DNA of 64,000 bases, taken from Paragordius varius (Eukaryota; Animalia; Nematomorpha). A program made the translations under genes and the position numbers. The stretch spans positions 1,550,001 through 1,614,000 of the forward strand of contig OZ176053.1 in assembly GCA_964247055.1 (NCBI GenBank), read 5' to 3'. Below, in pieces: positions 85 through 53,720 of the stretch (the stretch's first letter is position 1; every line of letters begins with the position of its first letter). The notes below the pieces were generated by a model. It was not told the DNA's origin. It searched no databases and worked only from the letters and a program-made list of their open reading frames with translations.

Positions 85-762
85 GGTGAAAATGGTTGGA
101 TGAAAATTGTGACGAGCGCAACACATGACGGGAAAGGGAATGATTATAATTTAGGTTTTATATTTTTGCTCATAAATATACATAATTTTGATTTGAAATG
201 TTATAGTAACAATGTATAAAATAAATAATTGAATAAGGTAATTACAAAATAAAAAATAATAGAAATATTATTTAATTAAACAAGGGGTTTTATAATTTGT
301 TGATTGTTTTAAAGATTAATTAGTATAATGTTTGTGCTAAATAAATTGACTTAACACATTAATTAAATCTTTTATACTAAAACCTTGCGCAATTTTACAT
401 TATATTAAATAATTGAATGATTTAAACAGAAGCCCTTTTTAGTAGCGACAAAGTTTTAAATAATTTTTTTACATGAAAATAACATCGATATTAACAAAAT
501 TGTTGTTGAACTCCATTATATAATGTTATAAACGAAGAAAATTAAACTAAAAAAACTGATATCCAAATGATATATATGCTACTTTCAACTTAAATTTCAA
601 TTCAATTTTCGTTTTGAATTAGGAATTGAAACTGAGTGTGCTTATGCGTTGGCCGAACCTGATCCTGTACCATTCAATGAAACTTCTTTGTTGGTTTCAG
701 AGCATTTTGCAAAGCGAAATAATATAATTTACGAGAATGATATATATTTTAATACATTTTAA
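85..762 (+). CDS. CTSZ: Cathepsin Z/X, last two exons (85-154, 623-762); gene starts upstream of the window
   Basis: Spliced translation GENGWMKIVTSATHDGKGNDYNL-GIETECAYALAEPDPVPF... matches the cathepsin Z C-terminus ([30 protein letters not shown]); GT-AG intron 155-622 is phase-consistent; TAA at 760-762. Confidence 0.9.
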
Positions 763-1091
763 CACAATTTAAACATACAATACTGACATTATTTTATACT
801 TTTTATAACATACATTTATTCGCTTTTAAACTAACATAGATTTATTCATATTTTAATATTTTTAATATATTTTCAAAAAAATAGTATTCATGGTACTCTT
901 CTTATTCACATAACTGTTAAGCTCAAATTTTTTATTATTTCACATATAACTATAATCATGAAACAAATAATAAATATTTTTGTTAGATATATTATTATTT
1001 TGTTTTTGTCTCTGATTTCAATTTTGGATGTTTTTGTTGAAAAAAAAGGTTTTGGATTAAACGGTTTTGATAGCGATATTTTTGGTTAATA

Positions 1092-1316
1092 CAGTATGCA
1101 TTTTAATGGTTCCTTATTTCACACTATAGTTGGGCAAATCGCAACACAGTGGTGTATGAAAAAATATAACAATATGTTGAATAAACAATAATATTTTCCA
1201 TTCTTACATTACATTGTTTATTTTATTCAATATTTTGTTGTCGTTTTTCCATACACTACTGTGTTGCAAATTGCCCAAATATAGTGAGATAAAAGCAACC
1301 ATTAAAATGCATGCTG
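1092..1316. mobile_element. Fold-back MITE with TA target duplication (Tc1/mariner-like)
   Basis: CAGTATGCATTTTAATGGTT... / ...AACCATTAAAATGCATGCTG long imperfect inverted repeat, flanked by TA at 1090-1091 and 1317-1318. Confidence 0.75.
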
Positions 1317-1588
1317 TAAATTTTATAATTAAAAAACAAAAATAATTGAAATATAAGGTTTATATTTTTTAAAAAAATATAATCCCAATAAATTTAAAAT
1401 CGTATTCTCAATTGCCAAATAACGCTGGTAAAAAAATATTACAAAAATGTAAATAAGCTTTATTCAATATTTATTTTACATTTCAAACGTGTTAATAATA
1501 AAGTGCATTGGTTAAGGGGTCTTAAAAACATTTGTCTACAATATTAATTGTTTTTACATATATTAATTCGAGAAGTTTCGATAAAATA

Positions 1589-3229
1589 TTAATGTTTTTT
1601 ATCATTACTATCACATGTTTTGTAAAGATTATTGGCACCAATATAAGCAATAAGTTCATCAGGGACCAGGTATTTAATTGATTGACCCTTTGAGATGGCT
1701 ACTCTAAAATTTATAATAATTATTAATTAATTTTTTTTGCTACACAAAATTTAGTTTTTAATACAATAAAAATTATTAATAAAAATTAATATTTTGGTTA
1801 AATACTGATAATCTTTATTAGGTATAAATGATATTTTTACCGTAAAGCAGTTGAACTTATTTCGTTTGGAACAGGGTCTGACACAATATGGATTTGATCC
1901 TATTTTGTATACACAAATAAATAAATACATTGAAAAATCTTAATTTTTATGTGGCGTCCAACTAATTATAATGCATTTTTGACATTAATTATAATGATTT
2001 TAGTAAGACTAAAATCAAAATATTCTTCATGTCTTTACCATATTATAATTTGAAATTTTTAAATTTATAATAAGAGGTTTACTTAAAAATCTGTTTATAG
2101 TGGTTTTTGACCGTAATCAATTGTTTTCAAATACGCCATTTACTTTACAATGTTAATCTCTTAAACACTTTAGCAATTTTATTATAAATGATTAAAATGT
2201 ATATCGTATACCAGATCATAAAATATGAAATTTTTACCCTTAGCGGTTCCAACATTGGTAATTTATCAAAAACATTTTGTATGTTTGATCCGAACCGTGT
2301 AACGACAACCAATCCAAATTGCGTTATGATATCATGAATCTTAACATTTACATATTAGTTTATTAGTAAAATCAATTAAAAATAATATTATTAGTAATAT
2401 TCCATTTACAATTCAAATTCACCCTTAATTAATTCAAATTCACCCTCGAACTATTCAAATTCACCCTTAAATAAATTATATATTTTTTAAGATTAAAAAT
2501 TACTTATATATTTATATATTTTTAATTTCGTTTGAATTTAAATGCTGAAAAAATAATAAACTATGGCATAAATATATATTTTATATTAATAATGAGTTAT
2601 ATTAATTACAAAATATATTTTTAAGGTGAATTTGAATTGTTCCTCGGTGAATTCGAATTGTAAATGGTATATATATATATTTACATTTTGTTAAGAAGTT
2701 TTATTGAAAAGCGCTATCGCTATTCTATGATAAATATTTTACATGTTTATGGTCCCAAAGATTCGGAACGAGAAATGTTTCAAACATATCAGCTCCACAC
2801 AATAACATTAAATTAGCTTTGAAAACATTAAGAAGCAATGTACTTGAAGTTGAGAAGGTCGTTTTTAATTGTGATAATACATCATAAGTTTTGGACCAAT
2901 CTTTCTGATCACTTTCCCATGAACTCATTCTTTAAGAGACTAAATAATTATTAAAAGTACCTAATCCAATCTGATGATTGTAAAGCTATTGTAATCATGT
3001 CTCGCCTTTGTTTAGCAGGTACAAGGTTCTACCAAATAAAATATATGCAAAACCTTTTTGAAATAACCATCACTGACGGGAGAAATATAACTTTCGGTAA
3101 CGTCAAAGTTTTTGGCACTTAAATAATCTCTAGCGATTTCTAAATAAATTATTTTATACCAAACATCCGCAAATGCATGTAATTTATTGGATTGAAAGAC
3201 CCGCATGATAGGAGAGCGGTTTTATTCAT
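1589..3229 (-). CDS. NMNAT: Nicotinamide mononucleotide adenylyltransferase, 7 exons (3229-3160, 3139-3054, 3028-2961, 2929-2743, 2339-2238, 1899-1841, 1703-1589)
   Basis: Spliced protein has CGSFNPINYMHLRMFE, ISPVSDGY, WES, LLCGAD, FGLVVVTR, NEISSTALR and SIKYLVPD motifs; all six introns are GT-AG and restore the frame (20, 25, 31, 403, 338, 137 nt). Confidence 0.95.
2399..2670. mobile_element. MITE family A (TACCATTTACAATTCAAATTCACCCT termini, internal ~21-bp repeats) in NMNAT intron 4
   Basis: Inverted termini CCATTTACAATTC / GAATTGTAAATGG with subterminal AATTCAAATTCACCCT repeats; other copies in the window. Confidence 0.8.
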
Positions 3230-3861
3230 CATACGTTTATAATACAGGCGTATTAACATAAGGAAAAGGGATTGAGGCGAAGGCAATTTCCGCAAAAAAT
3301 GTTTGGGCTAAATTTCTGAATTTCAAATTGTCAAAAGATCAAGAATATTAAATAATATTGAATAATTATGAAAATATTATTTTTAAACAAGTTAGGCACA
3401 CAGTATGGTAAAAAACTTTATAAATAATAAAGATCGCATCGATAAAAACGTTAAGAGGCGCTAGGTTTTCGTAAACTAAAATTGGATAAAATTTCTAGAT
3501 TTAATTATATTTTCTACCCACAATTATAATAAATGTAAGGTCAAACTTGAAAAAAAAACAATTTTTTTTAAAAATATTTATACTTGTAAAATTATTCAAT
3601 ACTGATCAAAAAAGACATTAACATTCAATAAATTTAACATAATGATTTAAGGCAATACTTATTACAATATAAAAAGATAAGTGATATTATCACAAATATT
3701 GGGCGCTTTTTATTATACATTTTATAAATAATAAATTTTTCGAATCGCATTCAAACTGTTAAAAACACTTTTTTTATATGTAATACCAGGTATTCTGTCA
3801 TCATGTTTATTAAATAAAATAACAATATACAGAGTCATGATAATAATATCTCAAGGTCTAT

Positions 3862-15964: not shown

Positions 15965-18900
15965 ATGTATGCTGCTAGTAAATATTTATTAAATTATCCT
16001 CATAGTAGTTTTGCCTCCATCTACAAAATTAATAAAAAATCCACACCTACATCTAAAAATGTTATAAAATCTAATGTATGGACAACATCTACAAACAAAT
16101 TTACCATTTACAAAAAAATAAATAATACATCATATACTCCATCGAAAGATACCAGATCTTTAAATTCACGTAATTCAACACATACACAACTATCCGCTTG
16201 TCGAGAAAAGATATTAAAGAAGTATAAAATACGATATGTTGAAAAATCAAAAGCTTCTCCTATTGCTTACAAAACCGTTAGTCGGCAAAAGTCAATTAAG
16301 CATACACCATATAACAAAATATCTCCTTATAAAACTAAATATGTAAATAATGTATCTTATGATGTATCCCGGTATTTTAATAATTAATTTTTTTAGATAT
16401 ATACTCAAACGGAGTAAATGTGTGTTGTTGCAAAAATCTTTTACATCCAATGACAAATCGGTAACTTTTGATAAAAAGTCTGCCAATTGTAAAAAGCATT
16501 GCATCTTTTTTAATCGCTTTGGAAGGTGTACTAGATCACCTCATTGTCCATACATTCACGATGTCAAAAAGATTACTGTTTGTGTTAGGTAAAATTTAAA
16601 TTATCGACTTATTCAAATTTTTGCAAATTTATTATATAATTTTTACGAACCACAGAACTATATGATCTATTAAAGATTTAGCCGATTTTATTTATTTTCA
16701 ATATTGTAAATGTACATGGCTAAAAAATGTTGATCCACTTTTTGGATACATCCGCCCTTTTATATAAATTATAAAAATAGCCATAAAAAAGTGCTCATTT
16801 TTGAAGTTTATTAATCTTTAAGTTTATATAATTTTTTTTCATATAATTATTGTTAGGTATCTCAGAGGTAGTTGTTCTGTAGTGAATTGTCCATTTTCTC
16901 ACAAAATTTCGAGTAAAACAAAGTTGCCGGTTTGTAAATACTTTCTTCGTGGAGGTTTATGCGACAAAACAGCTGATGTTTGTCCATACCCCCACATATA
17001 CTATGGCCCCTCAACTAATAATGTTACTTCAAACAACATTAACAAAAACCCTTACATCAAAAGAAATACTAAGGTTAGGCATTTTTTTGGTATTGTTTAC
17101 AATAATAAAAAAATTAATAAAAAAAGAAGTAAAAATACAGCTTAATTTGCATGGAATTATAACATTAGAGACCCTCAGTTTCACATATCTTAGAATTATA
17201 TGGATATGTAGAAAAAATTCTGCAAAAAATGACACTTTTGCTTTTAAAAGCATGTCTTTTTATAAATAAAACTTTGGCCTTTTATCTTTACTCTCCGTAT
17301 AGCAATTGCTGTTGTAAAAGTTTTACCTTGCATAATTTTTATCTTATTATTTTTAGATCCAAGCAAAGTACAAACCCCCAAATTTACTGTCTTATGTAAC
17401 AAAACGAAGAAGTTTTACACCATTGAATTATTCCTCTTGCTCTGCGTAAAAACTTTTTTTTCGATTTTTGTTTTGTCAAATTATTATGTAAATATGTATT
17501 CCGCTTATATATATATATATATTATCATCAATCATTTTTGTAAGTCGTTTCTTCATGGTTTTGTAATTTGAGGCAAGGTTTTACGGATTATATGCCCTTA
17601 TAAACCAACCCCTTTAACTCAGAGGTGAGGGTACCTTATTCGCTGCACCAGGCTAGAGAATGTCTAAAAAGACTACGATTTTCTCAAATCGACCTCCTCC
17701 GTTGGCCTTACACATCGTGTAAGTTTCCGGACATCACCACGTGGAGGTGGAGGTAGGATTTTGTATAAAAGATAATAATAATAATTTACAAATACAACCA
17801 GAATTAATTAAATCCATATGGCAAAAATATATGGAGCAAAATCTAAACAACCCTTTAACACCCATAATAAATTCTGACCGAGATCCCTGTTGTGGCCCAT
17901 TAAATACATTCACAATACAAGAAATTGAGATTGCTTTAGACCAAATGAAATCAAACAAGGCTTCGGGCCCTAGTGAACTATGTTTTGATATCATTAAATT
18001 AATACCCAATATAACCATGCTTCTAACAAATTTATTTAACAAAATAATAGATGAAATGAAAATACCCAAAGACTGGGAAAAAAGCATTATATTTCCCATT
18101 TTCAAAAATAAAGGAGATATCCTAACCTGTTCCTCATACAGGCCCTTAAAACTTCTTGAACATGGGTTAAAAATTTTTGAAATGTGCCTCAAAAATCGTA
18201 TCATCCAGCTCATATCAATTAATCCAATGCAATTCGCCTTTTCAGCGGACAAAAGCACAATCGATCCAATTTTCCTACTCAGACAATTACAAGATAAATA
18301 CCGAGCAAAAGGTCGTAAACTATTTCACCTTTTTGTCGATTTAGAAAAGGCTTACGACTCAGTACCTAGAGCACTAATAATAGAATCACTGCGCTACAAC
18401 AACGTAGATGAATATACCATTAAGTTAATTATGTTAATCTACACTAACTCAATCAGTTGTGTTCTTACTCCTGTTGGGAATTCAGAGTATTTTAGTATAA
18501 ATACTGGGCTGCATCAGGGATCTGTCCTTAGCCCACTTCTTTTTATAGCTATAATTGATTACATAACAAAAGATATGAGAGAAGGTCTGCCTTATGAAAT
18601 TCTTTATGCAGACGACCTCATAATCACTGCCGAAGATATTTCAATACTCGAAAATAAATATCTTATATGGTCAAAACAATTACATAAATACGGTCTTAAA
18701 ATCAATACAAACAAAACTAAAATTCTAATCACAGGAGATGAACATAAAACTATAAAGTTCCCATGCCCAGTGTGCACCACTGAGGTAAAACTAAACTCAC
18801 TTTGTTGTACAAAATGCAGAAATTGGGTCCATAAAAAATGTTCCAACATAAAAGGAAAGTTAATTAATAATAATAATTTCATCTGCACACCATGTGCTTC

Positions 18901-19537
18901 ATCAATACCACAGCCAATATCGAATCCACGTACTATAAACTTTAATGGAGATAAACTAGAAGTGGTAACATCTTTTCCATATCTGGGCGATTATATAGCA
19001 TCTGATGGTTCTTTGAGGGATGCCATTTCTCATAGAATCAGACAAGGATGGGCCAAATTCAATCAATTAAAATATATTTTAACTAATAAAAATATCAAAT
19101 CGAATCACAAGATAAAGATTTACAAAATGGGAATAAGACCAGCTATGACATACGCTACAGAAACCTGGGCCCTTACAGCAACAGACCTAAATAGACTTAC
19201 TAGAGCTGAAAATCACATGCTCAAAATCTGCAACAATAATTTTGATAATACCATAGAAGAAGATGAACCCATAGCTCTATTCATCCAGCGCAATCGATTG
19301 CGATATTACGGACATATTCAACGTATGAATTCCGATAACTGGGTCCAAAAAATACAACATTTAAATATACCCGGCCCAAACAGAAAAGGCCGCCCTAAGC
19401 TCACATGGTCCAAACAGCTGACCCAAGATCTATCACACTTCAATATTGAACACGAACAAGTCTTTGATAGGACATTGTTCAGGAAGTTGGTGCATGGAAA
19501 CCCCAGATACCCTGGGACCTAAAATGAATGGATGGAT

Positions 19538-19570
<33 letters not shown>

Positions 19571-39343: not shown

Positions 39344-39425
39344 TGGCAGCGGTGGGATTTGAACCCACGCCTCCGAGGAGACTGGTGCCTTAAACCAGCG
39401 CCTTAGACCGCTCGGCCACGCTACC
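39344..39425 (-). tRNA. tRNA-Leu (anticodon AAG)
   Basis: GGTAGCGTGGCCGAGCGGTCTAAGGCGCTGGTTTAAGGCACCAGTCTCCTCGGAGGCGTGGGTTCAAATCCCACCGCTGCCA: 82 nt, long variable arm, anticodon loop TT-AAG-GC, downstream oligo-T terminator. Confidence 0.96.
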
Positions 39426-53413: not shown

Positions 53414-53720
53414 GCTAAATCCTATTTGCCACCTCCCCGCGGAGTTAGCAGACTGAAGATGCGCTTAAGACGGCCAGCTTCCTAATGATCTGCAAAACCA
53501 ATAGTTCTGCACAAGGCTAGGTGTAAAAATCGACCTAACCATATAATTTTACTGCCAACTAAGTCCTATTACCACCTCGCCGTGGTGTTGGTTGGGGGAA
53601 GAAAATCCATTAACGGCAAAGTCCATATTTCTAATTCTGTAAAATTATTAGTTGTACACAAGGGCATGTATTACATAAGCCGTCTCAACTGACCATGAAG
53701 GAATATAATGGATATGATAA
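53414..53720 (+). mobile_element. Older copy of the ribozyme-associated short retroposon, with two tandem degenerate HDV-like cores
   Basis: CCTATTTGCC-ACC-TCCCCGC-GG-AGTTAGC (53421-53449) and CCTATTACC-ACC-TCGCCGT-GGT-GTTGGT-T-GG (53565-53595); tail AAGGGCAT...CTCAA...CCATGAAG...GATATGAT as in the 17524-17757 copy. Confidence 0.55.

Follow-up and report, generated by a model that had tools for sequence, protein, structure and literature searches.

The minus strand at positions 17693-17763 of the window (the whole 64,000-nt stretch of DNA analysed here) very probably holds the remains of a decapitated ribozyme of the drz-Agam-1 type. The ribozyme belonged to the head of a ~3.4-kb RTE-like retrotransposon and would have reached its present site, as a dead relic, in a single insertion of the twin-priming kind. 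Intact copies of the same element elsewhere in the genome carry the helix strand that the window copy has lost, and the missing 3' half of the element lies directly beside the remnant, in the opposite orientation.

Results

The parent retrotransposon

The ribozyme forms the first ~77 nt of an element of ~3.4 kb, two copies of which, both of the same ribozyme family as the window copy (family A), are 99.3% identical across about 3.45 kb. A 5' UTR of 213 nt is followed by a single ORF of 1061 aa (element nt 214-3399). The predicted protein matches the Pfam models Exo_endo_phos and Exo_endo_phos_2 over residues 87-309 and RVT_1 over residues 592-807, with Exo_endo_phos and RVT_1 above their cut-offs; a PHD-like Cys-rich finger follows the reverse transcriptase (RT) domain, with a Pfam PHD match that falls below the cut-off. 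In the family-A element a (GGAT)n tail is reached within ~25 nt of the ORF stop. A related element with a 998-aa ORF is headed by ribozymes of a second family, family B. A compact size (~3.2-3.5 kb), a single ORF combining APE and RT, a very short 3' UTR and a microsatellite tail that replaces poly(A) are traits of RTE-type LINEs, and we call the element RTE-like, a provisional clade assignment drawn from architecture alone. The ORF product shares no more than 33% identity with the closest proteins in the databases, which are unnamed. The two nearest (P0001 and P0002, 33% identity) come from ~3.1-kb metagenome contigs that gave no HDV-like match at E <= 1.

The preliminary description of this DNA had associated the fold with the heads of retrotransposon RNAs, and this is where it lies: the APE+RT element starts at the ribozyme's G1. 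Similarity between copies sets in at this base (within 0-8 nt) and extends downstream, and the sequence upstream is different for each copy. All 13 family-A heads begin within element nt 1-12, as expected of a template RNA whose first base is set by ribozyme cleavage. In their upstream flanks, members of the element family show a preference for TA-rich targets.

An inverted insertion in the window

With a full-length copy as query, blastn resolves the window insertion into two pieces of opposite orientation that abut at a 2-nt junction (Table 1). The 5'-ward piece, on the minus strand, retains element nt 7-250, the longer piece, on the plus strand, retains nt 1639-3424, and nt 251-1638 are missing. 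The longer piece bears an open C-terminal reading frame that encodes RT and the PHD-like finger, and its (GGAT)n tail ends near 19541. At the other end, where the remaining copies run on past element nt 250, the window switches to (TA)n. The 2 nt common to both pieces represent a microhomology, which is weak evidence.

The insertion is flanked by (TA)n on both sides, and the repeat nature of this sequence prevents the sizing of a target-site duplication. Judging from the sequence, the left (TA)n and the right (AT)n are probably the halves of one (TA)n target that became duplicated, and the left tract is probably also the site at which internal priming occurred, through microhomology with the end of the element piece (...GATAATA).

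Table 1. Positions in the window of the insertion, its borders, the parts of the ribozyme remnant and the neighbouring reading frames
Feature	Positions	Strand	Description	Basis
CCCH zinc-finger ORFs	16350-17145	+	last recognisable finger ORF stops at 17145	
Left border	17506-17522		(TA)n, entered from element ...GATAATA	sequence
Inverted 5' segment	17520-17763	-	element nt 7-250: ribozyme remnant, rest of 5' UTR, first 12 codons (ATG 17556-17554)	blastn, 99.6% over 244 nt
HDV-like ribozyme remnant	17693-17763	-	element nt 7-77	sequence, RF01787 alignment, P1 pairing 1/7, intact copies
Last base of P1 5' strand	17763	-	within ribozyme remnant	
J1/2	17762-17758	-	AAAAT; within ribozyme remnant	
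P2	17757-17749 / 17700-17693	-	8/8 paired, one bulged A	direct reading
P3	17748-17746 / 17738-17736	-	ACC/GGU, 3 bp	
L3	17745-17739	-	UCCACGU, 7 nt	
P1 3' strand	17735-17729	-	GAUGUCC	
P1.1 strand	17728-17727	-	GG	
P4	17723-17717 / 17713-17707	-	perfect, 7 bp, loop GAT	
J4/2	17706-17701	-	GCCAAC; cytosine of C-N-A-A at 17705	
Inversion junction	17762-17763		2 nt (TG on +) common to both pieces	both blast alignments
Direct 3' segment	17762-19547	+	element nt 1639-3424	blastn, 99.2% over 1786 nt; ORF, Pfam, tail sequence
ORF of 3' segment	17741-19522	+	593 aa, stop 19520-19522	
Right border	19540-19568		(AT)n, directly after (GGAT)n tail	sequence

These data modify one point of the preliminary description, according to which the ribozyme had been 5'-truncated at a LINE junction. 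The truncation is real, but it does not mark the border of a foreign element. Since the adjoining plus-strand RT reading frame is the element's own 3' half, the presumed LINE junction is internal to one insertion and corresponds to an inversion junction within the same element. An antisense 5'-ward piece placed 5' of a sense 3' piece, together with an internal deletion and a flanking target repeat, constitutes the signature known from twin priming in L1. Among the 13 family-A heads, that of the window is the only inverted one; a different head-adjacent inverted arrangement is found at another locus (L015).

One could envision that the same layout arose from two independent insertions placed head to head, one of a 5'-truncated copy on the plus strand and the other of a minus-strand copy from which a later deletion removed everything beyond nt 250. 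A preference for TA-rich targets makes repeated hits at a single microsatellite possible, and the arrangement at L015 could be taken as a precedent. We nevertheless find this account improbable, for it requires that the two copies abut exactly, with no target DNA between them, and that the subsequent deletion end in (TA)n. Moreover, both pieces are young to the same degree, at 99.6% and 99.2% identity to the full-length copy, and the specific combination of an antisense 5'-ward piece on the 5' side with an internal deletion is that of twin priming.

The inverted join might alternatively be an error of assembly inside a repeat family whose members are 99% identical. The join is known from the assembly, and among the short-read contig pieces listed for four public runs none bridges 17762/17763 with at least 31 nt on each side. 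However, unitigs are by design interrupted where repeats begin and end, the flanks stand at single-copy depth and are continuous with the block, and the join combines microhomology with the geometry of a biological event. In addition, the assembly comprises 44 contigs and is probably based on long reads. Together, these points make an artefact very unlikely. In the same four runs the summed contig depth of the block, a quantity not equivalent to copy number, is 10-190x that of the flanks and rises toward the 3' end, which fits a multi-copy LINE subject to 5' truncation.

It is also worth considering that the minus-strand piece (17520-17763) could be complete in itself, as a member of a new family of short SINE-like retroposons that join an RTE-like tail to a ribozyme head. 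In favour of this reading are the length of just 244 nt, the ribozyme at the start of the piece and its near-identity to other copies. Yet in every other copy the sequence runs on past nt 250 through the full-length (3.4-kb) element, and none of the 13 family-A heads provides a further example of the same 250-nt end. The piece ends in (TA)n, its strand lacking a (GGAT)n tail, whereas the missing 3' half adjoins it in the opposite orientation. The existence of such a family must be rated as highly improbable, and a single, internally inverted insertion of the RTE-like element is the reading that we retain.

The insertion begins 375 nt beyond the stop of the last recognisable CCCH-finger ORF. 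As the preliminary description had noted, the ribozyme lies on the strand opposite these reading frames, and it would therefore be missing from the transcript of that gene. The same description had placed the site in an intron of ZC3H3; what the analysis saw of such a gene are the plus-strand CCCH zinc-finger ORFs at 16350-17145, and both the name ZC3H3 and the intron are putative.

The ribozyme remnant

Reading the minus strand from 17757 to 17693 gave a sequence identical, base by base, to the one transcribed in the preliminary description, and all the helices listed there could be located (Table 1). P2, P3, P1.1 and P4 follow each other in the order of the nested double pseudoknot. The cytosine at 17705, in the C-N-A-A stretch of J4/2, would be the catalytic-type cytosine, a role assigned by analogy with HDV and CPEB3. 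When the window was scanned blind with all Rfam families, two matches exceeded their gathering scores: one tRNA and RF01787 (drz-Agam-1, an HDV-like ribozyme). The latter covers 17693-17769 on the minus strand and scores 38.4 bits, just 1.4 bits over the gathering score of 37 (E-value 4e-4 for the whole window, 4.4e-6 in a local scan). Thermodynamic folding of the nested part gave a non-significant z-score of -1.5 (MFE) and did not discriminate the sequence from chance. What supports the fold is thus the covariance model together with covariation, and not folding energies.

The stretch in which the model places the P1 5' strand (17769-17763, TTTATAC) pairs with the P1 3' strand, GATGTCC, at one of seven positions. 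The P1 5' strand is thus absent from the window, in agreement with the preliminary description, which had also predicted from the 3' strand what the lost partner should be: GGACATC. This very heptamer is present in four full-length family-A copies (L003, L005, L007 and L008), directly before AAAAT-CCTACCTCC, and P1 is paired at 7/7 positions in intact copies. The window copy lacks the first 6 nt of the P1 5' strand, including the cleavage-site G1, and the inversion junction occupies their place. Without G1, and with a single base left of the seven in the P1 5' strand, the active double pseudoknot cannot form and the window copy is a dead relic. Deprived of G1, of the context of the scissile phosphate and of P1, it is almost certainly inactive in cis, a conclusion for which the preliminary description had settled on "probably".

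Sequences that could replace the lost strand occur farther upstream. The minus-strand heptamer GGAUAUC at 18122-18116 could pair with GAUGUCC at all seven positions (six Watson-Crick pairs and one G-U), and three further, wobble-rich 7-mers lie at 18067, 18007 and 17863; the distance to the core is 100-360 nt. Four 7-mers capable of 7/7 pairing within 640 nt compare with roughly 0.4 expected, by a hand estimate. Conceivably, the inversion placed a new P1 strand upstream of the core, so that an antisense transcript would fold with an insert of 100-360 nt in J1/2 and cut at a new site; the result would be a natural ribozyme re-armed by a retrotransposon rearrangement. We hold this to be a very slim prospect. 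A long unstructured linker in J1/2 reportedly works against the activity of HDV-like ribozymes (PMC4908430). The 7-mers lie antisense to the ORF of the element, a place where selection for ribozyme function could not have acted, and we treat them as chance occurrences.

Ribozyme families and covariation

The 110-Mb genome contains 94 instances of the pattern ACCTCCNCGNGGT-N7-GG, which describes the core, and a single instance of its reversed control. The genome-wide covariance-model search proposed in the preliminary description returned 25 matches to RF01787, 19 of them above the cut-off, with a best score of 50.6 bits. Full-length family-A copies score between 39.6 and 44.7 bits, and the full-length loci L026 and L027 likewise score with this model.

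At least four families can be told apart among the cores from their P1 3' strand. Family A, to which the window copy belongs (GATGTCC), counts 13 copies, family B (GTTGGYY), in which we include a variant, B', ~49, family C (GCACCCT) 30 and family D two. The two strands of P1 change together from one family to the next: GGCCAAC faces GTTGGCY in family B and GGGGTGC faces GCACCCT in family C. Over 18 distinct heads, the P1 pseudoknot is paired at 97.6%, and both partners change at five of its seven pairs. The observed covariation score was reached by none of 500 shuffles, and controls in which the strands were slid against each other were 25-50% paired. P2, with its bulged A, is paired at 8/8 positions in A, B, B' and C through four different pairs of sequences, with compensatory changes at six of the eight pairs. 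Pairs in P1 were counted on the gap-free first 43 nt of the heads and those in P2 by a script that parsed the sequences; a MAFFT alignment of the full ribozyme misaligned the 3' halves of A and B and was left out of these counts.

The covariation among copies that the preliminary description had anticipated is therefore found in P1 and P2. It is not found in P3, which, like P1.1, is invariant among the heads and hence uninformative in this respect. The sequence observations that the description had named as refuting, an absence of copies with a complementary P1 5' strand and an absence of covariation, are contradicted by these results. The C-N-A-A-C sequence of J4/2 is kept in A, B, B' and C. 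P4, on the other hand, varies from a 7-bp stem in A to a GNRA hairpin of 4-5 bp in B and another 5-bp stem in B', and is absent in C; such free variation fits a peripheral helix. At the family level the HDV-like fold is well supported. That it might be a chance look-alike unrelated to ribozymes, as the folding z-score and the narrow Rfam score of the window copy might suggest when taken by themselves, is hardly conceivable in view of the excess of genomic cores over the control, the compensatory P1 and P2 changes across four families, the finding of the predicted P1 strand in intact copies and the position of the fold exactly at the 5' ends of the elements.

Discussion

The association of HDV-like ribozymes with RTE elements is already known, and the window copy is an ordinary, inactive relic of this known system. 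Ribozymes of this class are found at the 5' ends of R2, L1Tc, baggins and RTE elements, which have no promoter of their own, and free the element RNA from co-transcripts (PMC6765202; Ruminski et al. 2011, as summarised in PMC6765202; PMC3185411; PMC3774820). By analogy, the ribozyme of intact copies of the present element would cut read-through transcripts just 5' of G1. The cut would set the 5' end of the element RNA without the need for a promoter of its own, as in R2, L1Tc, baggins and RTE. The likeness extends to several features. In the present element, too, the ribozyme constitutes the first ~77 nt, with a predicted cleavage site at the element's first base, the sequence is conserved downstream of this base and differs for each copy upstream of it, and a single APE+RT ORF is accompanied by no evident promoter. 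Unlike those elements, the present one is known from sequence alone, its protein reaches no more than 33% identity with any match, and a PHD-like finger follows the RT domain.

The closest relative of the ribozyme itself is drz-Agam-1 from Anopheles gambiae (RF01787). The two share the order of their parts: P1, a short A-rich J1/2, P2, a P3 of 3 bp (ACC/GGU), a 7-nt L3 (UCCNCGN), the P1 3' strand, the GG of P1.1, P4, a J4/2 with C-N-A-A and the P2 3' strand. In the cmscan alignment their cores are nearly identical (ACAAAAUCCU...ACCUCCNCGUGGUG...CCGGA). In contrast, the sequences of P1, P2 and P4 differ, the host is worm-like and AT-rich, and no mosquito, and the window copy has lost the P1 5' strand. 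Also unlike drz-Agam-1, the ribozyme has sister families in the same genome in which P4 is a short GNRA-capped stem or does not exist.

The product of twin priming is an element split into two inverted parts, missing internal sequence and enclosed by target-site duplications (PMC2837659). The model of Ostertag and Kazazian for 5' inversions of human L1 is described in PMC2837659 and PMC2912911. A similar event would account for the layout in the window as the outcome of one insertion into a (TA)n tract. First-strand cDNA synthesis, starting from the tail, would have halted at nt 1639. [quoted passage not shown] Joining of the two cDNAs would then have brought antisense nt 250-7 against sense nt 1639-3424. 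With human L1 inversions the window insertion has in common the opposed fragments, of which the 5'-ward one is antisense and on the 5' side, the internal deletion, the short microhomology at the junction and, probably, the flanking target repeat. It differs from them in involving an RTE-like element, in having a microsatellite tail instead of poly(A) and in that the duplication cannot be delimited in (TA)n. A further difference is that the inverted cDNA reached to within 6 nt of the RNA 5' end that the ribozyme would define. This last property lends indirect support to a processed 5' end at G1.

Taken as a single locus, the relic carries little weight, being an inactive piece of mobile DNA that lies antisense to a neighbouring gene. 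Its value is that of a worked example, in which a missing P1 strand was predicted from sequence only and then confirmed by intact copies. The layout of the insertion suggests that inversion of the twin-priming type also operates in an RTE-like family. Finally, the genome holds at least four co-varying lineages of HDV-like ribozymes, positioned exactly where RTE-like elements have their 5' ends, which make up a natural covariation set for this fold, and the minimal form of family C, devoid of P4, offers candidates for very small active ribozymes.

Variant heads, Cys-rich finger and insertion sites of the RTE-like elements

In the genome assembly, a minimal HDV-like head that lacks P4 occurs about 30 times (family C; for example L033:60-130, and the copies at L035 and L038). 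In these heads UUAAUA links the P1.1 GG to the downstream J4/2 sequence CCAAC, and P1 (GGGGUGC/GCACCCU) is perfectly paired, with a G1-U wobble at the first base of the element. Family C heads were not among the top matches to the Rfam drz-Agam-1 model (RF01787). Decay of the ribozyme core is illustrated by a tandem pair of family-B-like heads within the window. The P3' strand of the first has changed from GGT to GGA and L3 of the second carries a C to G change; as a result of these mutations, neither head fits the core pattern or gives an Rfam match.

Features located in the window and at L026, a genomic copy of the element
Feature	Location	Strand	Remarks
tRNA gene	window 39344-39425	-	82 nt vs 71-position model, 56 bits
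Decayed family-B-like heads, tandem pair	window 53417-53524 and 53554-53717	+	75-81% identical to nt 2-172 of element B
PHD/C1-like Cys-rich finger	L026:6443-9628, residues 810-853	-	Pfam
PHD/C1-like Cys-rich finger	window 17741-19522, residues 342-385	+	Pfam

In both element families, a Cys-rich finger lies immediately C-terminal of the RT domain (Pfam PHD, E = 2e-4 to 4e-4, with a C1_1 match in family B). Such a finger is not a known feature of classical RTE elements.

The tRNA gene in the window is longer than its model; the extra length may come from an intron or from a long variable arm.

At L015 (G000:C2:12933242-12936311) and L037, part of the head (nt ~8-28) is repeated ahead of G1, immediately upstream of a full head. 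L015 also carries part of element B (nt ~430-1570) in antisense orientation just upstream of a sense head, a layout that differs from that of twin priming. Insertions of these RTE-like elements very often adjoin (TA)n tracts (upstream flanks of many copies: L008, L013, L016, L043 and L046, and window 17506-17522), which suggests that the element endonuclease has a target preference for TA repeats.
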